A DNA stretch of 63,599 nt, counting the filler, from Octopus bimaculoides (taxonomy: Eukaryota): assembly GCF_001194135.2 (NCBI RefSeq). It is 5 parts of 4 records of this genome, joined end to end, with 100 filler letters (N's around TTAATTAATTAA, not from the genome) between each part and the next. Parts side by side here need not be neighbours in the genome. Positions count along the whole stretch, not along the records: positions 27,548 to 41,350 come from NC_069009.1; 4 more parts are not named here. One strand, given 5' to 3'. The stretch's first letter is position 1; each line of letters begins with the position of its first letter. Under the pieces are notes generated by a model. The model did no database searches and was not told where the DNA came from. It was given only the letters and a program-made list of their open reading frames with translations. The position numbers were made by a program, and so were the translations under genes. This document shows positions 27,545 through 41,934 of this stretch, piece by piece.

Positions 27545-27735
27545 NNNTATATAGGGAGAATTCACGAAAAAACAACAGACGAAGACAGTTGATGTAAACA
27601 ACAAATGGATGTATTAGTATAACGCTCGGGAATTGGGAAAGTCTTTAACGTTTCGAGCCTGCGCTCTTCAACAGAAAGGAACACAGAAAAAAACAAGGAG
27701 AGAAAAAAATATGTGTAGTGGTCAGCGATCTATCA
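27545..27735 (-). mobile_element. PLE-type terminal repeat with a variant hammerhead-like motif at 27643-27678
   Basis: CUUU-CUGUUGA-A-GAGC(GCAG)GCUC-GAAACGUU-AAAG. Confidence 0.55.
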
Positions 27736-27818
27736 TGATATATATAGGTATATGTATGTATGTATGTATGTATGTATTTATGTCTGCATCTATACATATG
27801 TATTTAATCCTGTTTCAG

Positions 27819-27976
27819 TTTAGAAAACAACATAGAAATATTTGCAATTTACTGCGCTGTACCTAGTGAAATTAGGAAAGATGAAGCTATGCAGAATATT
27901 AACAATGTTCTGAATACATCACTGACTTTGCGTAACTTAAGAATTCCGCACCGTAACATAGAATTAATTGGAGAAA
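27819..27976 (+). CDS. aGPCR exon c (phase 2 to 1): LENNIEIFAIYCAVPSEIRKDEAMQNINNVLNTSLTLRNLRIPHRNIELIGE
   Basis: taatcctgtttcag acceptor and GAAA|gtaagt donor; open frame is in phase with the next exon. Confidence 0.85.
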
Positions 27977-28250
27977 GTAAGTAGTGCGTTTCTTATTATT
28001 TTTATACCAATCAAAATCTTCATATCATCATCGCGAAATATTCAGCGGCATTTCGTTCGTATTCACGTTCTGATTTCAAATTCCGCCGAGGTTGACTTTG
28101 CCTTTTGGCCTTCTGGGCTTGATAAAATAAGTACCAGTTGAGTACCGGGGACGATGTAATGGACTCACCCTCTCCCCTGAAATTGCCGGCCTTGTTGCAA
28201 AATTTGAAATCGGTGCATATCTCACGCATATGTTTTTTCTTCTTTTTCAG

Positions 28251-28362
28251 TGTTTTGTAATGAAGACTCATCAACTGACAATGGTACTTTTTATTGGCCG
28301 ATGACAAAAATAGGAAAAAACGTGACGATTCCATGCCATGCAAATGTAGCAAGAAGACACTG
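28251..28362 (+). CDS. aGPCR HormR exon 1: MFCNEDSSTDNGTFYWPMTKIGKNVTIPCHANVARRH(C)
   Basis: Long polypyrimidine tract then cag; C..WP.T..G....PC HormR signature; donor TG|gttcgt is atypical. Confidence 0.92.
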
Positions 28363-29608
28363 GTTCGTTTGTATTATTTTGTTTCTTCTCAAATTTCGAA
28401 GTTTTCACTTTCATCTCTTTGTGAGAGAATGTTACACAGTAAACTAAATAAAACACCTACAGAGATTACGATTACAGAATTTATGTTCGTCAATTCAAAA
28501 CATTTAACACTGTTTTACATTCTATACTAAGTGGTATAATTTTGTCTTGATCTACCAAGGATTTGGTTAGCAGCCAATATGATCGAAAGTTTTAAAGATT
28601 TTGTTGTATAGATTCATGTAATTACCTGGATATTCACGTCACAAATTGACCGTAGGAAAGGAAATACATATTTATTTACGCAGCCAACAGAATCTATCAG
28701 CAATTCTACTGATTTCAGAGTAAACTTTGTTTGAAATGTTAGCACAAGGCCAGCAATGTCGGGGTAGGGATGTAAGTCGATTAAATCGACCCTGATGTTC
28801 AACTGGTACTTCTTTTATCGACTCCGGAAGGATGAAAGGCAAAGTCGACCTCAGAACGTTAAGACGGATGAGATACCGCTAAGCATTTCGTCCGGTGCTC
28901 TAACGATTCAGCCAGATCACCACTTTATTTCAGGGTAATATTATTTATTCAATTATATGATTGCCTTAGAAAAACATGCTTTGTTGCTACATGGTGGTGA
29001 GCGAAGAAAGCAGACCGTCCTAGGACTTGACCCATCATTATGAAATGTAACACGGTGATTCTTCTTTCGTTTCCACTACACCATTCCACGTGCTAAATCT
29101 CTAAATCGTTCCTCTCGGGGGCTGAATTTTATAAGGTTTAAAACAAGATCAAAAAGCGAAATTAGTCAAATCTGTGCATGTAAAGGAAAATCTACTTCCG
29201 CCGCTATAGCTACTGATGATCATCGTCATAATCCTCATGTTATGATGATGACGATGACGATGACGAAATATAAATAGGTAAGTCTCCCATTCAGCAGCAT
29301 AGTAAATTAATATTTCACCACCCACACCATTCAAAGCAACCTTGTATTAAATAATCATGACAGCAAATTGTAATAAATAAAAGCAGAAGAAGCAATATCT
29401 GGCTATAAAATATTTTACATTAGTATTGAAGATTGGGAGGTGGAGTAAATAATATATCGCGGACAAAATACATTACAGCATTTGTCCTTGTTCCGTTAGA
29501 TTATGAGTTCAAATCACGACCTGGTCAATGTAATTCTTGCATTCCTCTGAGATGGGTGAAATAAGCGCGATCAAACACGACTGACAATGTATTACATTTA
29601 AATTTCAG

Positions 29609-29778
29609 CTCTTCCAGAAAGGCGGTAGATCTAGAAATACAAACAAACCAAAATATGATATCACGAGAGTGTTCGCCATTTACCGGTATCTGGCAGGAGC
29701 CAGACATGTCTCAGTGTTACAATACAGAGTGGATCACTCGACAACTAAAGAACATCACAAGCCAAGACATCGATGAAG
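29609..29778 (+). CDS. aGPCR HormR exon 2: SSRKAVDLEIQTNQNMISRECSPFTGIWQEPDMSQCYNTEWITRQLKNITSQDIDE
   Basis: tttcag acceptor and GAAG|gtgagt donor; W..PD.S.C motif completes the HormR domain. Confidence 0.93.
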
Positions 29779-30641
29779 GTGAGTAAAAAATGGTTTCGAA
29801 ATATTCTTATAACCGCGAGTCCGCTGCCCTAACCATTGGGCCATTGCGCCTCCGCTGTCTGTTGCTATAACATAGTAAAATCAAGGACATTTTTTGAAAG
29901 TATTCAATGATGTTATGACTTCAATTTCCGTCATGGCCGTGATGATGACTTATCTATATTAAGATTAGATCAGCGAATAGTTTTTGTTGTCTTTTTCTTT
30001 CTTGATTCACCTTGTCATTAGAACAATAACTTTATTCAAATTTACGGCCATTTATGATGGTGTCTCACAGCTACGATACGCCATCGTAAACATAGACTGA
30101 CGTATCACCGCTCATTGGTTGTCATTATTTGCAAAGCATCCATCAACAAGTGTATATCTTACTCAGCTATAAAGGATCCTTGTCCAATTAATGATACAAA
30201 ATAGGAGAAACTAAGGATGTATAACAATGAGTATTGGTCCTAAAGCTGGCACAAAAATCGCCATTAAAGAGAAACTGCATGAACAGTATCACGTCGGCAC
30301 CAGTGTAATGGTGAAAGGAAAGAAAGGGAACAAGGAATAGAATTTTTCTTTCTCTCTCTCTTGTGCAACTGTTACTTCAACACACATAACAAGAACAACA
30401 ACAAGATTATTGTTTCTCAACATCGGCTTTGTTTTTGTGTCCTCGTATCGAGAAAATTTTATTCCTTGTTCCCTTTTTTTCCTTTCACCATTACAAGTAT
30501 ATAACTGATGAATTGAACGCATTAAGCAGTCTTTGTGCTACTATCTCATTAATTGTTCTGTTGTGTTTAATTTGCATCTAGTATTTCGTCTCAGAGCGGT
30601 TGTAAAGTCCCTTAAATTTTATGTTAAATTTCCCATTGCAG

Positions 30642-30873
30642 AAAACGTTGAGCCGGTTTCAACAAAACTCCTGAATATTTCAGAGAAATCAGTGTATTTC
30701 AAAGCAGAAGATATTGACTTGGCTGTAGACACACTTGAGAAAATGGTGCCATTGATATCGAATGTGTCCGTCAATATAACACTGAACAATATACTTCCTA
30801 GCATCAACTATATGATAAACAAACCGGAAGAGGTTTTGGTTGAAGCTGGACAGTCAGAGAGAACTGGGGAAAG
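30642..30873 (+). CDS. aGPCR GAIN subdomain A exon: ENVEPVSTKLLNISEKSVYFKAEDIDLAVDTLEKM...GQSERTGER
   Basis: ttgcag acceptor and AG|gtaaaa donor; amphipathic helical GAIN-A-like sequence; phases 1 to 2. Confidence 0.92.
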
Positions 30874-30904
30874 GTAAAATTCATATCACATTTGTTGTTA
30901 GTGC

Positions 30905-30945
<41 letters not shown>

Positions 30946-31139
30946 AAGAAGAAGAAGAAGAAGAAGAAGAAGAAGAAGAAGAAGAAGAAGAAGAAGAAGA
31001 AGAAGAAGAAATGGCATCGGCAGCAATAGTAGCACATAAATATTTACTAATCAATATAATTAGTGCAATTACATCTATAGTGAATTACGTATTTGAAACA
31101 TGCTATCAGTTGAAAGTTGCTTTTTCGGTTTTCTTACAG

Positions 31140-31311
31140 AATGCTGGACGTCATAGAAATAATCCCAGAAAAGATTCCACTGGAAAAGCAGCAAGTCGCG
31201 GTTTCGTATTCTAATCTTGCTATTGGTGCTGCCAAAGTGGATAAAGACACTTTCAATGGTCTGATCTTTGCTGTTTCATATGGAACCAATGAAACGAAAG
31301 CGAGGAGTGAG
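31140..31311 (+). CDS. aGPCR GAIN exon: MLDVIEIIPEKIPLEKQQVAVSYSNLAIGAAKVDKDTFNGLIFAVSYGTNETKARSE
   Basis: ttcttacag acceptor and GAG|gtacga donor; phases 2 to 0. Confidence 0.92.
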
Positions 31312-31810
31312 GTACGATACTGTCTCTTGATTACTCTCTTATCAAGTGTCTCTTTTAAACCGCCATGAAATACATTAAGTAAGAAATACATTAGAAAGAA
31401 ATACATTAGTAAGAAATGTAATATCTTTATTGTCAGATGTGGTTGTTATAGTACAAAGCTTCATNNNNNNNNNNNNNNNNNNNNNNNNNNNNNNNNNNNN
31501 NNNNNNNNNNNNNNNNNNNNNNNNNNNNNNNNNNNNNNNNNNNNNNNNNNNNNNNNNNNNNNNNNNNNNNNNNNNNNNNNNNNNNNNNNNNNNNNNNNNN
31601 NNNNNNNNNNNNNNNNNNNNNNNNNNNNNNNNNNNNNNNNNNNNNNNNNNNNNNNNNNNNNNNNNNNNNNNNNNNNNNNNNNNNNNNNNNNNNNNNNNNN
31701 NNNNNNNNNNNNNNNNNTTATAAATTCTTATGGCGTCAGCAACATTCAGCAGCAGTAGTATTTTTTTTTTATCCATCAATTTCAATTTTTCTTTCATTTT
31801 TATCCACCAG

Positions 31811-31957
31811 ATATATAACAACTCAAACTCACAAGTAGAAGATGTGATGGACTTCATTTCTTTACCAAAGAGTTTATTAAAACATCTGAATGACGAAGAA
31901 CAGTCAAGTCTTTCAAGGATTTCGTTTTTGTCTATGCATGAAGATAAGCTTTATAAG
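31811..31957 (+). CDS. aGPCR GAIN exon: IYNNSNSQVEDVMDFISLPKSLLKHLNDEEQSSLSRISFLSMHEDKLYK
   Basis: Polypyrimidine tract then ccag, AAG|gtattg donor; ISLP.SL and RI.F....D.LY are GAIN-B motifs. Confidence 0.93.
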
Positions 31958-32642
31958 GTATTGTACAAAAATGGAATTATTTCTTAAGGGGGTTCGCAAA
32001 AGAATGCCTGAATTCATTGCTACTTTTTGATAACGAAAGAAACAATATTAATATAACACAAGAGCTTTGATGAATTGCTTCATCACACCAAGTTATATGT
32101 GCTGTGAGGAGAAGGGAAACGATGTTTTTCCTATCAACCAGGCGGTCATTAACGATGTTTATGTCACACGGCGTCAAACTGTTTCTTGGGGGTGGGAGTC
32201 ATCCTTTTTTCACCCAGTGATCCTTTGTAACCCTACTGTCCCAGTAACACAAGAGACAAGAGTACTTAGAGTAACCTCCTTGCTGGCCCAGTAGAAGGTT
32301 TACCATTTTCAACTATTGTAGAAATCATTTATCTCAAAGTGCCATGCAGTGAGATTGAACGCAGGATACGTTGATTACCAAGAGACCGTCTTAAGTGCAC
32401 AGACATACCAACAGCTCTTAATGCAAACAATTTGTATATAAAAGCAAGTTATCCATTCCTTAGAGCAAGGACAATCCTCTGCTATGAACTCACATGTAAT
32501 ATATATTGTAATATATATTGTATTAAGTTGTGCTGACTAAAGCAATGATGTACAACTCTGGCGTTTGGTTTCATGCTTTAACGATGTATTAATAAACTTT
32601 TCTATGAAACTAAATACTTTATCTAACGGCTTCTCTTTGCAG

Positions 32643-32771
32643 GTAACACAAAAATCTAGTCCCAAAGCAAATGCTAAAATTAACAGCCATATTATTGCTG
32701 CAAATATTCCTAACGTTCAAATAACCAAGCTTGATGAACCAATTAGAATATCCTTCAACGTAATAGATCCG
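32643..32771 (+). CDS. aGPCR GAIN exon: VTQKSSPKANAKINSHIIAANIPNVQITKLDEPIRISFNVIDP
   Basis: ctctttgcag acceptor and CCG|gtaagc donor; INS.II.A and L.EPI.I.F GAIN motifs. Confidence 0.94.
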
Positions 32772-32945
32772 GTAAGCACTATGTAGTTGTTGTTGTTGTT
32801 GTTTCATTGCAAAGGTCATGCTTCACTCCTGACGTAAACGTGGACCACGGCGGTACAAAAAGTATTAGTAATAGTAGCTGTTACTGTGTTGACAGCTATA
32901 ACTTATTGTATGTTGATATTTTATCACCATTATATTGTTTCAATG

Positions 32946-33326
32946 TGGAGGCACAATGGTCCAGTGGTTAGGGCAGCGGACTCGCGGTCATAGGATCACG
33001 GTTTCGATTCCCAGACCGGGCGTTGTGAGTGTTTATTGAGCGAAAACACCTAAAAGCTCCACGAGGCTCCGGCAGGGGATGGTGGCGAACCCTGCTGTAC
33101 TCTTTCACCACAACTTTCTCTCGCTCTTACTTCCTCTTTCTGCTGTGCCTGTAATTCAAAGTGTCAGCCTTGTCCCACTGTGTCACGCGGAATCTCCCCG
33201 AGAACTACGTCAAGGGTACACGTGTCTGTGGAGTGCTCAGCCACTTGCACGTTAATTTCACGAGCAGGCTGTTCCATTGATCGGATCAACTGGAACTCTC
33301 GACGTCGGAAGCGACGGAGTGCCAAC
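32946..33326 (+). mobile_element. SINE S2, full length, in the intron before the GPS exon
   Basis: A and B boxes intact (tggtccagtgg; ggtttcgattccc). Confidence 0.9.
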
Positions 33327-33567
33327 AACTACATAGATTTATAAACGAGATGGAATAATCAGTTAAGCTACATTGCAAACAGTGATGTTGAATTCACAAT
33401 GTCAATACTAACCAAACGTTGATGACCATCGTCTCTTCTGTTATTTTGTTAGTCAATTTAAATTCATTACATGTATTTTAATTGCTTGCATATTAATTTA
33501 GATTCATTTCAAGTATTCCAATTGCAAAGTAATTTGATTAAATTATCAGAACTTAAATTTTTTCCAG

Positions 33568-33720
33568 GATTTAACCAATCCACAATGTGTTTATTGGCAT
33601 GAATCTCCTGAACAGAATAATTCTCATTGGTCAACAGAAGACTGTGATATAGCCACCTCTGGACCTGGAGAGAAAGTGCTTTGTTCCTGTCACCTTCTTA
33701 CAAGTTATGCCCTGTTAATG
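33568..33720 (+). CDS. aGPCR GPS exon: DLTNPQCVYWHESPEQNNSHWSTEDCDIATSGPGEKVLCSCHLLTSYALLM
   Basis: tttttccag acceptor and ATG|gttagt donor; C.YW...WS...C...C.C...T..A.LM GPS pattern. Confidence 0.96.
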
Positions 33721-34034
33721 GTTAGTAACATTTTGACAAGTTAATTGTCTGTAATTTGGAAATTGTGCCTAAGCATTAATAATTTCAACAGCTATTAAAC
33801 CTAGTGTTGGTGGTTATTTTAGTAAACATATGAGGTTGATAAATTGTAAAACGTCACAGTTGTTCTCGCTTCTCTTGTTGTTTATTAGTTTAAACTCAAG
33901 ATGTTGTCCTTTACAGGGACCAAGCTACCATCCTCAATCAAATGCATGCAAATTCTCCCCCAATACGAGAGAAACAGTCACCGCTCTTGGTTTAAAATTT
34001 ATTGTGTTGCAACTATCTGAATGGTAGTCTAAAT

Positions 34035-34315
34035 CAGGGGTTTTCAAACTTTTTGACTTGCGGACCCCTTTATATTTCAGGCTTTACCTTAGGGACCTCC
34101 CTTATAAAGGCTTATGAAATTTATACATAAATATTTGCTTAAAATAACATATATTTTTACATTTGTTTATTTAACAGTATTTAACAAATAGGTTTATTGT
34201 CAATTAAAAGATTTCGATTAAAAAACATATATAAAATCAAATTGCCCATAAAAAGTATTTGCTGTCCACGGACCCCCCTGTCTTGTCCTTGCGGACCACT
34301 GTTTGAAAACCCATG
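34035..34315. mobile_element. hAT (Charlie-like) MITE family A
   Basis: cagggg ttttcaaac TIR; TSD gtctaaat / gtctaagt; inverse of 41015-41311. Confidence 0.9.
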
Positions 34316-35395
34316 GTCTAAGTGACAGAGACATATTTGATATATACTAGATCTCCATACCACAATAAATATGTTTGCGGCTTAGATGTTAAACCCTTGG
34401 TCTCTTGATGATCCTGTTGCAAAGTATAAACTCTCATTCACGAGATTTCTCCACCTGAGACTTTTATGTCAATAATGCACAGGTTTCCAATATCTGTCAG
34501 TTTTACAACACCTCTGCTACCCATAAAAATAAAACATACCCCTATCCATTGTACATATTTTAGCCTAAAGGAATAGTTGAAGTAATGCAATATGATACTT
34601 CACTCTATACCAGTTCTACTATCACCTGACATCACAAGGACAGAGATTAAATGGTTGAGTCACGGATGTCGTGTCTCATTGTCAGTGTTGTCAGGAACAT
34701 TATTGAATCAATTCACCTGTTGTCTCTTTGTTATTGTCTTCATTCCTGTTATCTCTTTTTTCCAAAGCAGTTTTAATTTCACATTTCTTTCTGCATCCAG
34801 ATATTCATTCATCACATATTTCCAAACAAGCTTGTTCCATTTTGTCATGGCTCACAATCTATAGTATCCATGACCAAAACATCTCTGAAGTGGACAAGTC
34901 CTCCTACTTCTTAAAAACAACTGGAACTATAGTATAGTACCAAGGATCTTATAAAGCAATATTATCTTCATTTTTTCCTGATGTTAAGTAAATGAGAAAA
35001 AAATAACTACTTCTTACAAACAATACCAGTCTATCTCAGTTAACAGATAGTTTACGTAAAGCAGCTTGAATTAGTTGTACTGACAACATATACTAAGATA
35101 TACCTTCAGTGGATTTGAGCTCAAGAGCGATGGGTTGGTGGTACGTTCTAACTCGACTTAGAAATCTCATATATATATTATAAAGACAGTGAAACTTCAT
35201 ATTAGAATTAGCTGTCATTTAACGGGTAATAGAAGATGACCCCCGCTAATATATTGTTTTTAATGCAGCTAACTGTAGTTCTCACCTCCAATATCAACAT
35301 TATATGCACACAAATTATTTATATAAGTCTTGACTTAGCATATAAGGAAGGAAGAGGAGGAGGGAATAATTCGTTGTTGTCTGTTTCTATTACAG

Positions 35396-35508
35396 GAATC
35401 CGATGAAAATGAAGGCGATACAAAGAATAATCATCTCTTATCTTTTATTAGCAGTGGAATATCACTTCTCTGTCTCATTCTTACCATGATAGTTCATGTT
35501 TGTTCCAC
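35396..35508 (+). CDS. aGPCR TM1 exon: ESDENEGDTKNNHLLSFISSGISLLCLILTMIVHVCS
   Basis: ttctattacag acceptor and AC|gtaagc donor; hydrophobic helix with GIS..CL motif. Confidence 0.92.
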
Positions 35509-35871
35509 GTAAGCATATCAGTTTCTATTTCCTTTCATAAACTGTTTAAATACAGAAAAACAGCATCCATTAGTTTGTGGATCTCTCACAGATTGGTAAA
35601 ATTGATGTAGTTGATATCTGCAGGAAAAACCATGGATGAGCACAAAAAATAATAAACGTAGTATTTTATGTCTCATACAAGTCATTATACACAGATATTT
35701 TACACCACATCTATATACATTCTATATTTAAATTTGATATATCATGTATATCCCAAGTGACCATCACCCATACACACAGTTGTATCTATTATTCATGGGT
35801 TGAGTGATTTAATGTTTTATGAGATTTAAACTTCGTTAGATGAATTATTACTTCCTTTTTAATTATTTCAG

Positions 35872-35995
35872 AAATCTGTGGAAATTAACGGATTCAAAAA
35901 TGTTGGTAAACATGTGCAGTTCTTTAACTGTCGCTAATCTTGTCTTTGTTGTTGGGTTGCTGGGATATGGTACAGAAATAACAGCTGTTTGTAAG
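35872..35995 (+). CDS. aGPCR TM2 exon: NLWKLTDSKMLVNMCSSLTVANLVFVVGLLGYGTEITAVCK
   Basis: attatttcag acceptor and AAG|gtaagt donor; includes the ECL1/TM3 cysteine. Confidence 0.94.
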
Positions 35996-36079
35996 GTAAG
36001 TGAAACCACATTAAGCCAGTACATGTTTTGGTTTATATCAAAGATTATGAACAATAGATTTTACCGTTAATAGCTTTAA

Positions 36080-36343
36080 TCCAAGAACTTGGGAGGTAAA
36101 ACAGTTGTAGTGATACCAATAATTGTCGGAGCCCTGGGAACAGTGAGTAAAAATGTCGAGAAGTACATGGAACAAATAGGGGCTGCAGTAAGGGTGAAAC
36201 ACTTGCAGAGAACAGCACTGCTTGGAACCGCTCGAATACTCCGGAAGGTGCTCGAAAAATAAGAGGTGTTACCTTAGTTCACTGGTAGTGAACAGCTGAC
36301 ACCGTAGTACATCTCCAGCGTTAGGAGCTGTGCAAAGACAATA

Positions 36344-36410
<67 letters not shown>
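36080..36410 (+). mobile_element. Dong/R4-clade LINE 3' end with (AAT)n tail
   Basis: 36098-36262 reads KTVVVIPIIVGALGTVSKNVEKYMEQIG...LQRTALLGTARILRKVLEK*. Confidence 0.88.
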
Positions 36411-36417
<7 letters not shown>

Positions 36418-36598
36418 CATCGAAAACTACCTTAGGAATGAGAACCCAGGGTTCGAAATTTCCCCAAGACACTTGATGAAAGCTGGAGGGTATATGAACC
36501 GAAACGTTGTGTTAACAACAAGCAAGATGAGGAGAAATATCCGTCAAATGTAAATAATGTACATAATTCCTCATCTCTTAAATATAGAACTGTATTAT
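36418..36598 (+). mobile_element. Hammerhead-bearing short repeat module (same family as 61528-61890 and 63198-63420), stem II damaged
   Basis: GACAC-UUGAUGA-A-[mismatched stem II]-GAAACGUU-GUGUU at 36468-36513. Confidence 0.75.
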
Positions 36599-36690
36599 CT
36601 ATACTCCATCCTCGCAAATTAATATATATTCGAGATCATATGTCAATGTCAGATATTATTACTGTTATCGTTTTTTTTCTGTTTGTGTAG

Positions 36691-36829
36691 GCAATGGCTG
36701 TTCTGATACACTACTTCATTTTGACATCTCTTATGTGGAAGGTTGTAGAAGCATTTCATATTTATCTAGATGTCGTTCGTAAAACATATCAGACGTCTTC
36801 TGTGAAGAGGAGTTCAATTTTGGCCTGGG
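36691..36829 (+). CDS. aGPCR TM3 exon: AMAVLIHYFILTSLMWKVVEAFHIYLDVVRKTYQTSSVKRSSILAW
   Basis: gtttgtgtag acceptor and TGGG|gtacgc donor; HYF.L....W...EA.H.Y motif. Confidence 0.95.
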
Positions 36830-37249
36830 GTACGCATAACAGTTTTCTGTCATTCTGTTAATGATTTCATTTCTCTCTCTCCCTCTCTCTCTCTCTCTAA
36901 CATACACATTCTTTCTCTTTCTTCTATTGGTGAGATGTGAAAGTAGCTGAAGCGAGATGTAAATATGGGGATACAAAAGTGGATGAAATATAACGTAATA
37001 TAACATATGATAAACTTAAAGAAAAATATTCTCAGAATTAACCATAACATCAACCTGAAATTATTTTCATTTTTATGCAAATAGTTTCAGCTTGATCACA
37101 TCGCTAGACGAAACCATTTCGCACAAAGTAATACAGCGGATGTGGGCAAATATATGACGATATTTATGTTTCTTTGTTGAAGAACAACTTGATGTATTGG
37201 TGAACAGTCAACAGCGTTGGAGAGCATAAAGTTTAAGTTTGTAGTTGAG

Positions 37250-37735
37250 AAAAAGTTAACTGACATGTCAAACTGGAAACCGTCTGAATATTTGGAAAGA
37301 GTTACCTATTTTGTGATGACTCGCGCCAGGTATCATAATGCAGATGTCATGACTGTTGTTCAATGCCTTTTAACACGATGAAGGCTGTAAGATACGACAT
37401 GGACAGCTGCAACAGAGACTGCGAAGTTGTGGCCAGCAAGAAGGGACACAGTAGGCATTGTGACTGCGTCATGCTGCACCGCATCTTTGAACTGGTTCAA
37501 TTCAGACGGGTATGTGAAGCTGTTTGGAGACTGCGGGCAAACCGTTGCTAGAAGGCCATATGTGTGCCAGGAGGATTCGACTCTTTGCTATACCTCCGGA
37601 ATGAATCAGAAGTGGCTGTCGGGGACTTTCTACACCTTCACCAGCCCCAGTTTCTGATCTCCTAATTTCCCCAAGTCTAACCCCATGGATCACTATGTGT
37701 GGAGTGCGATTGAGAAAGACAACAACCGTTCTACT
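37250..37735 (+). pseudogene. Internally deleted maT (DD37D-like) Tc1/mariner remnant
   Basis: VVASKKGHSRHCDCV; NSDGYVKL...RPYVCQEDS...QKWLS..FYTFTSP; NPMDHYVWSAIEKD. Confidence 0.75.
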
Positions 37736-37800
37736 TATGATTGTAAATTTTCATTGATATCTACATATGTTTTATTCATTTCTGTATATATCGTTGTCAG

Positions 37801-37873
37801 GTCTTCCAGCTGTCATTGTCATAATTACTCTGGCAACTAACGACACAAACAATTACATCAGAATTGGACAATT
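37801..37873 (+). CDS. aGPCR TM4 exon: GLPAVIVIITLATNDTNNYIRIGQ
   Basis: cgttgtcag acceptor and TT|gtaagt donor; completes the WG.P motif. Confidence 0.93.
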
Positions 37874-39113
37874 GTAAGTATTTATGTGTTTTGTTGCCCT
37901 AATTTTATCTAGTCTTCACGACAGAGTAATGGTTTCAAATTTCAGCACAAGCAGAGTAGTTTCGGTGGAGGAAAGTAGTCGCTTACATCGACCTCAATGC
38001 TGAACTGGTACTTATTTTATCGAAACTGGATTATGTGGCAAACTGGATGAGAGTGGCAAGGAATAGTATCTGGGAAATAAAAACTCTAAAAAGGTCTGTG
38101 TTTAGAAGAAAGGACAATAAATAGAATAACAAATTAACAGATTGGACACCATGTTCAGAAAAACAAAAGGCTTTGTTAAATTCTTCAGCACCTGAACATG
38201 GATGAAGAAAATATCTGACCATGGTTGGTGGATCGAACATACTGCGTCATTCGTCCATGTGCAAAGATGATATTATATATATATATATATATATATNNNN
38301 NNNNNNNNNNNNNNNNNNNNNNNNNNNNNNNNNNNNNNNNNNNNNNNNNNNNNNNNNNNNNNNNNNNNNNNNNNNNNNNNNNNNNNNNNNNNNNNNNNNN
38401 NNNNNNNNNNNNNNNNNNNNNNNNNNNNNNNNNNNNNNNNNNNNNNNNNNNNNNNNNNNNNNNNNNNNNNNNNNNNNNNNNNNNNNNNNNNNNNNNNNNN
38501 NNNNNNNNNNNNNNNNNNNNNNNNNNNNNNNNNNNNNNNNNNNNNNNNNNNNNNNNNNNNNNNNNNNNNNNNNNNNNNNNNNNNNNNNNNNNNNNNNNNN
38601 NNNNNNNNNNNNNNNNNNNNNNNNNNNNNNNNNNNNNNNNNNNNNNNNNNNNNNNNNNNNNNNNNNNNNNNNNNNNNNNNNNNNNNNNNNNNNNNNNNNN
38701 NNNNNNNNNNNNNNNNNNNNNNNNNNNNNNNNNNNNNNNNNNNNNNNNNNNNNNNNNNNNNNNNNNNNNNNNNNNNNNNNNNNNNNNNNNNNNNNNNNNN
38801 NNNNNNNNNNNNNNNNNNNNNNNNNNNNNNNNNNNNNNNNNNNNNNNNNNNNNNNNNNNNNNNNNNNNNNNNNNNNNNNNNNNNNNNNNNNNNNNNNNAT
38901 TTTATCTTCCAATATAAAAACACTCGAAAACATGTCCAAAAATGTGTTTTCAAGTGTGTTTATATTGAAATATAGAGTTAGTTAACAATGTAAATCGTCC
39001 ATAACTCACTGCAACTATAAGGATACCATGTCGTTTCCTTCTGGATCAAAAACCCCTGACTGAACATTCAAAGGGCCTTTTTTAATTGAATTTCTTTTTT
39101 TTTTTTTTTGCAG

Positions 39114-39505
39114 CTGCTGGTTACCCAACTCATACTTCTACGGTGCCTTCCTGGGTCCCGTGATGATCATTCTTACCTTCAACATCACCATGTTTTTTCT
39201 CGTTATGTACCGTCTCATCTCAAAGTCAAACGACAAGAAATTTGAACACGCATCAAACAAAGCACGTATTTTTGGCATGGCTGGTTCGTGTCTCCTACTT
39301 GGGGTGCCGTGTATCTTAGCATTCCTCTTATTTGACAAAACAACCAAACTCATTATTACCCTCTTGGCAATTTTCAGTGTCCTTCAAGGACTCTTTATCT
39401 TCATATTCTACTGTATATGCAAAAAGGATGCCAGACATGTCGTCTGCCTGTGTTTATGCAAACGAAACAAAGTACATCTGAGCCAAGCTCCGAAGGATAT
39501 AAGAA
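39114..39505 (+). CDS. aGPCR TM5-TM7 and helix 8 exon: CWLPNSYFYGAFLGPVMIILTFN...LLGVPCILAF...SVLQGLFIFIFYCICKK...APKDIR
   Basis: (t)n-gcag acceptor and AGAA|gtaagt donor; CWL, P......N and LQG.FIF motifs; Cys-rich juxtamembrane tail. Confidence 0.96.
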
Positions 39506-39855
39506 GTAAGTGCAATTTGGTCTCTCTTGTCCTTGCCACCCTCAAAAACAATATTGTCGTGATGGGGGATAAACGCAAACATCGCTTCTGTCAGCACCAC
39601 CACTATCAACATCACCATTCTCAGGACGGACGGACAGACATCGTCACATATACCAATTCAACTGTGGTTGTTGCCGTTATCGTTATCATCATCATCATCA
39701 TCTGTATATGTATGTATAGATATATATATATATATATATGCTTATATGTAATATATATCTGTATATAAAATATGCATATGTATGTATAGATAGATATGCA
39801 TATTTTATATACAGATATATATTACATATAAGCATATATACATATATATACATAA

Positions 39856-40224
39856 GGAGCACTCCATTGGTTACGACGTGGGTTCCAGTTGTTCCGATCA
39901 ACGGAACAGCCTGCTCGGGAAATTAACGTGCAAGTGGCTGAGCACTCCACAGACACGTGTACCCTTAACGTAGTTCTCGGGGATATTCAGCGTGACACAA
40001 GGCTGGCCCTTTGAATTACAAGCACAACAGAAACAGGAAGTAAGAGTGAGAGAAAGCTGTGGTGGAAGAGTACAGCAGGGTTCGCCACCATCCCCTGCCG
40101 GAGCCTCGTGGAGCTTTTAGGTGTTTTCGCTCAATAAACACTCACAACGCCCGGTCTGGGAATCGAAACCGCGATCCTATCACCGCGAGTCCGCTGCCCT
40201 AACCACTGGGCCATTGCGCCTCCA
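39856..40224 (-). mobile_element. SINE S2, full length, in the last aGPCR intron
   Basis: Reverse complement of 32946-33326, including an identical stretch of roughly 95 nt. Confidence 0.9.
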
Positions 40225-40444
40225 CTCTTTACGACATAGTCCCGATAATTAATTCCTCAACCTCTCACAGCTTATGTAACAACTAAATTGTGTTGTTCAA
40301 CCATGCTTCTTCTTCATGTAACATCTTTTCACAAATGGCGAAGCAGCAGACGACAATTGTAGCTACATATATAAAATATAAGGGCCAGGGAATATTGAGT
40401 CAAAGCTTATTATTTTATATATAATTTCCACATTATGTTTCCAG

Positions 40445-40497
40445 GTTCAAGCTCCGGTAATGTAGCAGAAAGAAAAACAGAAGAAGCAAACTTATAA
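40445..40497 (+). CDS. aGPCR last coding exon: SSSSGNVAERKTEEANL*
   Basis: tatgtttccag acceptor; phase 1 matches the previous donor; ends in TAA. Confidence 0.8.
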
Positions 40498-40823
40498 ATG
40501 AAAATCAAAATATTTGCCTTCAAAAGTCACCTTTAACCGATTCATGCCGATCGTCTGTTTAAACTGACGCTTGATTTATAAGAGTATAAAACAAATGCTT
40601 GATACAAATTGTCATTTGTGTATGATCTGTATCAAAGAATGAAACGTGTTCTTAACGAGTATGCAGTCTGTATCAAACGGATTTCAATGAAATTTTTTTT
40701 CAGTTGTTATTTAGGTCAAAATAATAGTATCTGTGAATTTTCAGGCAATTTCATTCACTGAAAAAATTTCAGCACGAATGAGTCAATCATACGTTAAAAG
40801 GCTAAATTTACTTCTTATATCAC

Positions 40824-40910
40824 AATAAAGATCTTTCACTATAACGTAGCTTTATTTTTACCAATCAATACAACACTATTCAACTAAAAGAATACTTAAT
40901 CCACAATAAA
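40824..40910 (+). terminator. Candidate polyadenylation signals of the aGPCR (AATAAA at 40824-40829 and 40905-40910)
   Basis: Two AATAAA hexamers 330-410 nt after the stop codon. The motif is also common by chance in AT-rich DNA. Confidence 0.35.
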
Positions 40911-41014
40911 GAAATTCTAAACAAAGTCAAGTGCATGACTATTGACTGATATTTTCTAGCCGCCAATTTCACCATATATTTTCTCAGTGTAATCTTTAAC
41001 TTTGTTCTATAATG

Positions 41015-41311
41015 CAGGGGTTTTCAAACTGTGGTCCGCGGACCACAGGGGGTCCGCAAGGACAAGACAGGGGGTCCGTGGACAGCAAATACTTTTTATG
41101 GGCAATTTGATTTTATATATGCTTTTTAATCGAAATCTTTTCATTGACAAGAAACCTATTTGTTAAATACTGTTAAATAAATAAATGCAAAAATATATGT
41201 TATTTTAAGCAAATATTTATGTATAAATTTCATAAGCGTTTATAAGGGGGTCCCTAAGGTAAAGCCTGAAATATAAAGGGGTCCGCAAGTCAAAAAGTTT
41301 GAAAACCCCTG
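41015..41311. mobile_element. hAT MITE family A with a perfect 8-bp TSD
   Basis: TIRs caggggttttcaaact / agtttgaaaacccctg; TSD ctataatg at 41007-41014 and 41312-41319. Confidence 0.95.
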
Positions 41312-41934
41312 CTATAATGGACTAAATTGCTTTGATACTACAATCTATTCNNNNNNNNNNNNNNNNNNNNNNNNNNNNNNNNNNNNNNNNNNNNTTAATT
41401 AATTAANNNNNNNNNNNNNNNNNNNNNNNNNNNNNNNNNNNNNNNNNNNNTTATACATATCATACATATATGTGTGCGTGTACACATACACACACACACA
41501 AATACAAACACACACACACACACACACGACTGTATTTGTTGTACAGCATTCCTGATGTGAAATCGTGTGTTGAAACAGATATTGTTATACTTAGGGATGG
41601 TCGTATTTTGCCAATTAAACACACGCACTATGTATTTGCTATTCACTTCAGCTTTATTATCATTATTGTAGTTTCTTAAAGCTCTTCCGTCACACACTCC
41701 GTGACCTCGTATATATATATATATATATATATATATACGGTGCCTAGTGCAGCCACTGGTTCTCCAGACCCCAGTCACACCGTCCAACCCATGCCAGCAT
41801 AGAAAACGGAGGTTAATCGATGATGATGATGATGATGATATACACGTTCCCTTCCGGTTATTTTAAAATGTAACCACATGTGAATCGTTGGCGATGTTTT
41901 TTCCTCCGTCTTCCTTTTCTATTGGATTCTCCTT

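Follow-up and report, generated by a model that had tools for sequence, protein, structure and literature searches.

What becomes of a receptor when the residues that should switch it on are replaced at several sites, in a gene whose reading frame stays open? The question is posed by an adhesion G-protein-coupled receptor (aGPCR) gene of Octopus bimaculoides within a 63,599-nucleotide stretch of DNA, the window, in which positions 27548 to 41350 (from NC_069009.1) form the usable piece. The initial annotation described an intact open reading frame that had lost its activation machinery at several independent sites, and took it for a non-signalling decoy or adhesion anchor, a receptor rewired for another mode of activation, or an early pseudogene under relaxed selection. 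The window gene is a live, diverged aGPCR paralog, expressed in neurons and under selection, and not a dead gene. Its ectodomain is under purifying selection in its own lineage, and its seven-transmembrane region (7TM) has evolved at about the neutral rate. Judged from the sequence, the odds seem about evenly balanced that the protein is an uncleaved, ectodomain-driven recognition or adhesion receptor in which canonical tethered-agonist coupling is weak or absent.

Residues of the activation apparatus

The protein contains a Pfam 7tm_2 match (3.9e-28, residues 415-646) and a Pfam GPS match (4e-9, residues 355-400) in which the C-x-C and Trp pattern is kept; with both the 7TM and the GAIN domain with its GPS present, the gene encodes an aGPCR (class B2). 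The Pfam HRM match is sub-threshold. The best sequence matches in the PDB are ADGRG2 (8e-40) and ADGRG6 (9e-37), and the 7TM is closest to those of vertebrate ADGRG2, ADGRG4 and ADGRG6. The protein is predicted to fold as HormR-GAIN-7TM, as an AlphaFold2 model (30 homologs, mean pLDDT 73.5) contains GAIN-A helices, GAIN-B strands (the Stachel forming the last of them), seven transmembrane (TM) helices and helix 8. Foldseek matches the modelled 7TM to ADGRG2 structures with target-normalised TM-scores of 0.77-0.83 (0.7-0.83 over aGPCR 7TM structures overall), and also finds inactive CD97, the zebrafish Gpr126 ectodomain and, for the ectodomain, HormR-GAIN crystal structures.

Substitutions were scored against about 30 octopus paralogs, and the six departures from consensus that the initial annotation had listed (GPS His, Stachel Phe, TM1 start, TM3 Met, TM6 Trp and TM7 Asn) are all real against this set. 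Two of them lie at the cleavage site and in the Stachel.

33691 to 33702, plus strand: cleavage site, CAC CTT CTT ACA (H392 L393 L394/T395); the family has TGT AAY CAT CTT ACA (C-N-H-L/T), the window gene TGT CAC CTT CTT ACA (C-H-L-L/T)
33706 to 33708, plus strand: Stachel position +3, codon TAT (Y397); the family has Phe (TTT/TTC), one substitution away (TTT to TAT)

At the GPS, two point changes (AAC to CAC and CAT to CTT) place Leu at -2 and His at -3, and the autoproteolysis triad H(-2)-L(-1)/T or S(+1), described as HL/T (PMC13197933), is broken, the window protein reading H-L-L/T. The Stachel is TSYALLM against a consensus of T-x-F-A-V-L-M; T+1, A+4, L+6 and M+7 are kept, and the change from Phe to Tyr at +3 is conservative. 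The Stachel linker, encoded in exon 9, is ESDE against the family's D/N-V-Y-Q, a difference of several nucleotides, and at the start of TM1 an in-frame deletion of 9 nt (three codons) between 35458 and 35459 has removed N/Y-I/V-G. Within the helices, TM3 carries F3.44L (L494 at 36730-36732, TTC to CTT, two substitutions) and M3.47K (K497 at 36739-36741, ATG to AAG, one substitution), TM6 carries W6.53C (C617 at 39310-39312, TGG to TGT, one substitution) and TM7 carries N7.46S (S639 at 39376-39378, AAT to AGT, one substitution). The initial annotation missed G507D at the cytoplasmic end of TM3 (D507 at 36769-36771). Further changes are a 6-nt in-frame deletion after R510 (between 36780 and 36781), by which the conserved V-F of intracellular loop (ICL) 2 is lost, accompanied by F510R, and a C-terminal EEANL where most paralogs have A-E-T-x-[FLTA], a class-I PDZ-type motif, with loss of the Thr at -2. 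A regular-expression search for an exon encoding a C-terminal A-E-T-x-F found none.

The stalk residues that enter the pocket of aGPCRs are F(S3), L(S6) and M(S7) (Qu et al. 2022, PMC9046087). W6.53b is in direct contact with the stalk and packs with F3.44b, M3.47b and I/V5.47b into a hydrophobic core, and in ADGRD1 and ADGRF1 alanine mutants of the W6.53/F3.44/M3.47 core lose more than 50% of basal activity (PMC9046087). Three of the four residues of this toggle-switch core are changed in the window protein (L3.44, K3.47 and C6.53) and L5.47 is retained, as are N5.50, G6.50, Q7.49 (Q642) and G7.50 (G643). Among 13,611 vertebrate aGPCR sequences, 30.6% are without the H and/or the S/T, and the triad is conserved in only 17 of 33 members (PMC13470171); being absent from about 30% of vertebrate aGPCRs, the HL/T triad does not define membership. 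To say that the activation machinery had been lost was thus an overstatement: the triad and the W6.53 core are changed, but half of the canonical positions are kept and loss of the GPS His is common.

The load of changes in the window gene is high even for its family. Of 89 positions with at least 90% conservation among 27 octopus members, it departs from the family at 15, the next worst member doing so at 8 of 90, and it has private changes at 17 of the 96 sites (17.7%) that are invariant in eight threaded paralogs, against 0-9% for the others. At 12 activation positions set a priori (H-2, T+1, F+3, L+6, M+7, 3.44, 3.47, 5.47, 6.50, 6.53, 7.49 and 7.50), five are changed, which is near the rate of unconstrained sites and, given the 17.7% rate elsewhere among invariant sites, has a binomial probability of about 0.05. 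Losses of the same kind are scattered among paralogs. W6.53L is present in P0022 and P0025, N7.46S in P0024 and P0029, and N7.46T in P0003, P0017 and P0019; the GPS reads DRLK, with neither His nor Thr, in P0007, P0021 and P0035, and DYLT in P0025. In having such losses the window gene resembles P0025, which in addition lacks Met+7, P0022 and the DRLK clade, within which P0007 and P0035 carry a Cys where TM3 otherwise has Trp (W3.46); unlike the window gene, P0021 and P0035 have near-identical relatives in O. sinensis or O. vulgaris. These repeated independent losses suggest a family-wide drift from canonical tethered agonism.

Selection on the ectodomain and the transmembrane region

The 7TM of an aGPCR is usually under tighter constraint than the ectodomain. 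Nine genes were threaded on their genomic loci to give exact coding sequences, and the dN/dS ratio, omega, was estimated with a GY94-type branch model of our own (5-9 taxa) on a neighbour-joining (NJ) topology. Pairwise dS is unsaturated at 0.27-0.46, and the window gene's branch has a dS of 0.17 and a dN of 0.22. The estimates for this branch are given below.

7TM, 242 codons, 9 taxa: omega 1.28, background 0.52; p = 0.0006 against background, p = 0.34 against 1
7TM, 243 codons, 5 taxa: omega 1.12, background 0.53; p = 0.017 against background, p = 0.69 against 1
Ectodomain (HormR end and GAIN), 260 codons, 5 taxa: omega 0.43 (grid interval about 0.25-0.8), background 0.71; p = 0.21 against background, p = 0.024 against 1

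For the GPS, 7TM and C-terminus taken together, the lower 95% profile limit of omega is about 0.83; the upper end of the profile is unreliable (optimiser, omega at least 2), and the lower bound alone was used. When any other terminal branch is made the foreground instead, its omega falls within 0.28-0.69. The constraint on the two domains is inverted in the window gene, for which 7TM minus ectodomain identity is -0.08 against +0.07 in other pairs. A 7TM omega of 1.1-1.3 is compatible both with the decoy or anchor and with the rewired receptor of the initial annotation and does not set them apart.

Its third suggestion, an early pseudogene, is disfavoured by several lines of evidence. As had been claimed, the frame is open throughout 14 exons and the splice sites are intact (13 of 13 introns are GT..AG, 26 splice dinucleotides in all), with both N gaps in introns; no premature stop, frameshift or lost splice site was found in the 14 exons and 13 introns, and both deletions are in frame. 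The neutral expectation over the branch is 7.2 stops in the 348 codons from the GPS to the C-terminus and 15.3 in all 698 codons, and the probability of seeing none if the whole branch were neutral is 7e-4 and 2e-7, respectively (0.002 by forward simulation of 274 codons). Neutrality over half the branch is rejected too (4.7e-4, whole gene). Neutrality over the last 10-25% of the branch or less would allow a gene without stops (P = 0.22-0.02), but over so short a stretch omega for the branch as a whole could not have climbed from about 0.5 to 0.83 or more. Replacements have reached 17.7% of family-invariant sites against 42.7% of variable sites (Fisher p = 3e-5), and their mean BLOSUM62 score is 0.02 against -0.41 expected at random (p = 0.008). 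Helix hydropathy is preserved (p = 0.017), the TM helices having gained 2 charges where about six were expected and 0 prolines where three were expected. The 7TM is near-neutral, yet its seven helices remain hydrophobic, its family-invariant sites are spared and no stop has arisen in it.

Published expression of the window gene, given as between-tissue proportions in one paper, is 0.50 in axial nerve cord, 0.29 in subesophageal brain, 0.10 in supraesophageal brain, 0.04 in optic lobe and 0.03 in sucker, with a Tau of 0.908 (Ritschard et al. 2019 Table S2, PMC6408891). Axial nerve cord and brain thus account for about 93% of it, so expression is regulated and biased to the nervous system. Disabling lesions, whole-gene neutrality and a lack of regulated expression, the marks of a pseudogene, are all missing here, the last on the strength of the literature. 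The initial annotation would have been refuted had close paralogs shared these residues and signalled normally, or had the gene been unexpressed with a dN/dS near 1; paralogs do share single changes but none shares them all, the gene is expressed, and dN/dS is near 1 in the 7TM only.

How the receptor may work

With Leu at -2 of the HL/T triad, the GAIN domain most likely does not cleave itself, in which case the Stachel would not be exposed by release of the N-terminal fragment. The Stachel-sensing hydrophobic core (F3.44, M3.47 and W6.53) appears remodelled together with N7.46, with a Lys now at 3.47, and ICL2 and the C-terminal PDZ-type motif are altered as well. An uncleaved receptor with its core, ICL2 and tail so changed would probably have weak or no canonical tethered-agonist coupling to G proteins. 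It would work mainly through its ectodomain, as an uncleaved neuronal cell-surface molecule for recognition or adhesion, and the 7TM would anchor it in the membrane, signalling at most in a residual or modified way.

Such a mode of action is not without parallel, as cleavage-independent and Stachel-independent signalling and 7TM-independent functions of aGPCRs are all established (PMC9046087, PMC13197933). The GAIN domains of ADGRB2 and ADGRB3 have been seen uncleaved, signalling by ADGRB1, ADGRC1 and ADGRC3 is insensitive to Stachel deletion, and C. elegans LAT-1 has a 7TM-independent function (PMC13197933, PMC13470171). What the window gene may share with these cases is the lack of a competent H-x-S/T triad or of dependence on a tethered agonist, and a function carried largely by the ectodomain. 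They generally retain W6.53, whereas in the window gene this Trp and its TM3 packing partners are replaced. In addition, its losses fall on one recent paralog branch, whereas the known non-cleaving aGPCRs are old conserved subfamilies.

Several points weigh against an ectodomain-driven receptor. Cleavage-deficient aGPCRs are able to use their tethered agonist (PMC9046087, PMC13197933), and because T+1, L+6, M+7, L5.47, G6.50, Q7.49 and G7.50 are retained and the Phe to Tyr change is conservative, signalling may persist. A pure membrane anchor would have no obvious need for all seven helices intact. Adaptive re-tuning accounts for the omega point estimate above 1 as well as relaxation does, the estimate comes from a model that is neither PAML nor HyPhy, and gene conversion in ectodomain exons may have distorted the ectodomain omega. 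The expression table holds no absolute levels. Finally, the LRR and signal-peptide exons are parted from the gene by assembly gaps, and the open frame is shown from the annotated Met only.

Were the 7TM changes adaptive, the protein would be a neofunctionalised signalling receptor in which the pocket (K3.47, C6.53, S7.46 and L3.44) had co-evolved with the Stachel region (Tyr+3, ESDE and the short TM1 start); uncleaved, it would be activated by a re-tuned tethered agonist or by a new diffusible or lipid ligand, and would engage G proteins or another effector. We consider this rather unlikely, although much is consistent with it. The 7TM point estimate of 1.1-1.3 lies above 1, yet omega is not significantly greater than 1 (p = 0.24-0.69); variable sites have been replaced at 43% against a neutral estimate of about 31% from the dS of 0.17, yet the replacements run across all loops, including ICL1, ICL2 and ICL3, with no focus on the extracellular pocket. 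An open frame with hydrophobic helices preserved, the retention of T+1, L+6, M+7, G6.50, Q7.49 and G7.50, and a His gained at -3 while one was lost at -2 would all suit a working receptor. Accelerated evolution or positive selection is published for this octopus aGPCR group, 'group 3' (PMC6408891), and for ADGRG receptors steroids and small molecules are known that bind in contact with W6.53 (PMC13197933). Against this, a Lys within the TM3 core and the absence of both the ICL2 V-F and the PDZ-type tail resemble loss more than tuning, and no ortholog was found in which the new states could be seen conserved. A still more specific proposal, that positive selection dropped self-cleavage and the W6.53 sensor in favour of a new activation chemistry (Lys3.47, Cys6.53, Tyr+3 and the acidic linker) for neuronal recognition in the arm nerve cord, strikes us as improbable; given the repeated losses of W6.53 and of the GPS His in the family, it would make the window gene one of several parallel reinventions of aGPCR activation.

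A young pseudogene or dying duplicate, which had lost its function recently and was still transcribed with no disabling mutation so far, would account for a 7TM omega indistinguishable from 1, for the highest load at family-conserved sites (15 of 89, and 17 private changes among 96) and for the loss of the PDZ-type tail. It would also fit the lack of an ortholog of more than 72% identity among annotated O. sinensis and O. vulgaris proteins and an annotated model without signal peptide and LRRs, although the upstream LRR and Cys-rich exons are collinear and gaps most likely explain the truncation. We judge it a doubtful explanation nonetheless. Neutrality over 10-25% of the branch or less is compatible with the absence of stops (P = 0.22-0.02), but a neutral quarter of the branch or less cannot lift omega from about 0.5 to at least 0.83; moreover, there are no stops or frameshifts, the two deletions are in frame, 26 of 26 splice dinucleotides are intact, the ectodomain omega is 0.43, conserved sites are spared, replacements are conservative and expression is specific to the nervous system (Tau 0.91). 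At the other extreme, an ordinary canonical receptor would merely tolerate these changes in a fast family and would still cleave or signal through its Stachel as its paralogs do. The family background omega of 0.5-0.7, the like changes carried singly by other members (W6.53L, N7.46S/T, GPS DRLK/DYLT) and the conservative nature of Phe to Tyr agree with this, but we think it very unlikely, since no other member combines these changes, the shift in omega is specific to the window gene's branch, the HL/T triad relies on the His at -2 as its catalytic base and more than 50% of basal activity is lost when core residues are mutated to alanine (PMC9046087).

Locus, relatives and significance

The usable piece is 36% G+C, with N runs at both ends and two internal gaps, and is 100% identical to Octopus bimaculoides GCA_001194135.2 chromosome CM046629.1 at about 899-912 kb; window coordinates equal those of the extracted chromosomal locus (L001) plus 17888. 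The annotated gene, P0020 (XP_014782543.1, UniProt A0A0L8GB41, Ocbimv22036511m), encodes 698 aa in 14 exons at window 27889-40497. Its exons were first built by hand from stop-free frames and splice signals, after which the annotated protein was threaded on the DNA by exact matching, and the two models are in full agreement for every exon. Positions 33568-39505, the range given in the initial annotation, cover only exons 8-13 of the 14.

27889 to 27976, plus strand: exon 1; the annotated start is an internal Met, open frame and paralog homology reaching an acceptor at about 27818/27819 upstream
28251 to 28362, plus strand: exon 2, HormR-like domain, first half (FCNEDSS...PCHANVARRH); Pfam HRM E = 2.8e-4, under the curated cutoff
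29609 to 29778, plus strand: exon 3, end of the HormR-like domain
30642 to 30873, plus strand: exon 4, GAIN subdomain A helices
31140 to 31311, plus strand: exon 5, GAIN
31465 to 31717, no strand: assembly gap of 253 N within intron 5
31811 to 31957, plus strand: exon 6, GAIN subdomain B
32643 to 32771, plus strand: exon 7, GAIN subdomain B
33568 to 33720, plus strand: exon 8, GPS motif and Stachel core, residues 351-401; Pfam GPS 4e-9
35396 to 35508, plus strand: exon 9, Stachel linker and TM1
35872 to 35995, plus strand: exon 10, TM2
36691 to 36829, plus strand: exon 11, TM3 and ICL2
37801 to 37873, plus strand: exon 12, TM4; 1 replacement in 19 TM4 residues on the window gene's branch
38297 to 38898, no strand: assembly gap of 602 N within intron 12, unfilled in GCA_001194135.2
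39114 to 39505, plus strand: exon 13, end of extracellular loop (ECL) 2, TM5, TM6, TM7 and helix 8
40445 to 40494, plus strand: exon 14, C-terminal tail SSSGNVAERKTEEANL, followed by the stop TAA at 40495-40497

The gap at 31465-31717 is also unfilled in GCA_001194135.2. The larger gap lies 423 nt downstream of the TM4 donor (GTAAGT at 37874) and 215 nt upstream of the end of the TM5-7 acceptor at 39113. A hidden exon within it was ruled out: the exon 12/13 junction is in phase (TT/C, codon F551), introns equivalent to intron 12 are 0.7-3.8 kb in threaded paralogs, and the joined NNYIRIGQFCWLPN (TM4-ECL2-TM5) matches paralog NNYIRIEQVCWLS residue for residue with none missing (about 30 homologs), so no coding sequence lies in or across the gap. 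Mis-splicing was ruled out as the source of the odd residues, as exon phases and boundaries agree with those of eight threaded paralogs. Sequencing error was likewise ruled out by the 93 amino-acid changes on the branch; both assemblies share the same contigs. Two more gaps separate the piece from LRR and Cys-rich exons further upstream (L001 1-7318), which lie in collinear order and carry an annotation of their own as a 251-aa LRR gene. The start Met of the model is probably artefactual, owing to the upstream assembly gap or to annotation, and one gene has probably been split by gaps into the 251-aa LRR gene and the window gene model; because the upstream exons are present and collinear, the gaps would explain the missing N-terminus.

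An Rfam scan of the piece gave no match, and neither did a comparison of three stop-free intronic stretches with Pfam. Two pairs of inverted interspersed repeats lie in different introns (32945-33322 with 39859-40225, and 34035-34297 with 41051-41311), 91% and 97% identical and without an Rfam match, with a further copy upstream at L001 6445-6754. Long intronic low-complexity tracts at 30880-31040 and 36330-36440 are of poly-purine/pyrimidine and (AAT/ATT)n type, translate as poly-E/V/S/I/N and are ordinary microsatellite-like sequence.

A profile search found about sixty relatives, almost only in O. bimaculoides, O. sinensis and O. vulgaris, the closest being 62-66% identical overall, and the chromosome of the window gene also carries three paralog copies, at distances of about 60-160 kb. 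The whole family is fast-evolving (background omega 0.5-0.7). The window gene is a member of the octopus-specific LRR/HormR/GAIN 'group 3' aGPCR expansion, in keeping with the expanded cephalopod family proposed in the initial annotation: it is listed in Ritschard et al. 2019 Table S2 (PMC6408891) as A0A0L8GB41/Ocbimv22036511m, Scaffold81134, class B, group 3, and it falls within an octopus-only clade of the NJ tree, for which fish ADGRG6 and guinea-pig ADGRG4 served as outgroups. There it is sister to a clade of P0005, P0018, P0001, P0027, P0017, P0019 and P0003 and has the longest terminal branch (0.41). The tree contains no O. sinensis or O. vulgaris ortholog of it, and none more than 72% identical was found among the annotated proteins of these two species; P0069, P0070, P0006 and P0063 were rejected as an O. 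sinensis orthologue, being 65-72% identical over the ectodomain only, with P0069 and P0070 resembling P0006/P0017 sequences rather than the window gene. Exon 5 (31140-31311) shares 91.5% and 86% protein identity with paralog exons at L002 10521-10697 and 83409-83519 on the same chromosome, the paralog of the 91.5% match lying 60-150 kb from the window gene, against only 45-65% for the exons that flank it, and is on this account likely a gene-conversion tract. Several models in the family need care. RefSeq P0018 is chimeric (L002 10001-91698, same chromosome): its first two exons belong to paralog copy 1 and all later ones to copy 2, which lies about 39 kb off, and the model passes over an LRR gene between the two copies; the P0006, P0039, P0049 and P0057 models are apparently truncated or mis-joined.

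RefSeq names the gene 'adhesion G-protein coupled receptor G6', and ADGRG2 (GPR64), ADGRG6 (GPR126) and ADGRG4 are indeed its best sequence and fold matches over GPS and 7TM, with HYFxL...W-x-x-x-E in TM3, CWL in ECL2, N5.50, G6.50 and Q7.49-G7.50 in common. Unlike them, it has changed HL/T, Phe+3, M3.47, W6.53 and N7.46, identity is only about 30%, and its ectodomain is of LRR, Cys-rich, HormR-like and GAIN modules where the ADGRG type has CUB/PTX/SEA. No CUB or PTX domain was found in the window protein, and paralogs and upstream exons carry LRR and Cys-rich modules. Orthology with vertebrate ADGRG6/GPR126 was ruled out on the lack of CUB/PTX and the octopus-only clade, the RefSeq name reflecting similarity. 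The features reported for group 3 by Ritschard et al. 2019 are GPS and adhesion 7TM, LRRs in some members, tandem clusters, axial-nerve-cord bias, expression outside or alongside the brain, and accelerated evolution (PMC6408891), and the window gene shares them. That account discusses neither activation residues nor single genes, unlike the present one, in which the window gene stands out by the longest terminal branch, the highest conserved-site load and a domain-specific shift in omega.

The step forward is modest: earlier work has already described the family with its tandem expansion, expression and accelerated evolution, and aGPCRs that do not cleave or do not depend on their Stachel are well known. 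If the protein is an uncleaved receptor driven by its ectodomain, the window gene and the paralogs that lost the GPS His or W6.53 independently would form a natural mutagenesis series of aGPCR activation, showing which parts can be lost while selection keeps the protein. A constrained ectodomain and a free 7TM in one gene would give direct evidence from evolution that aGPCRs can act through the ectodomain with little signalling, a view so far argued mainly from model-organism genetics. For the octopus itself, such a receptor would bear on the diversity of surface recognition among its neurons, beside the protocadherin expansion.

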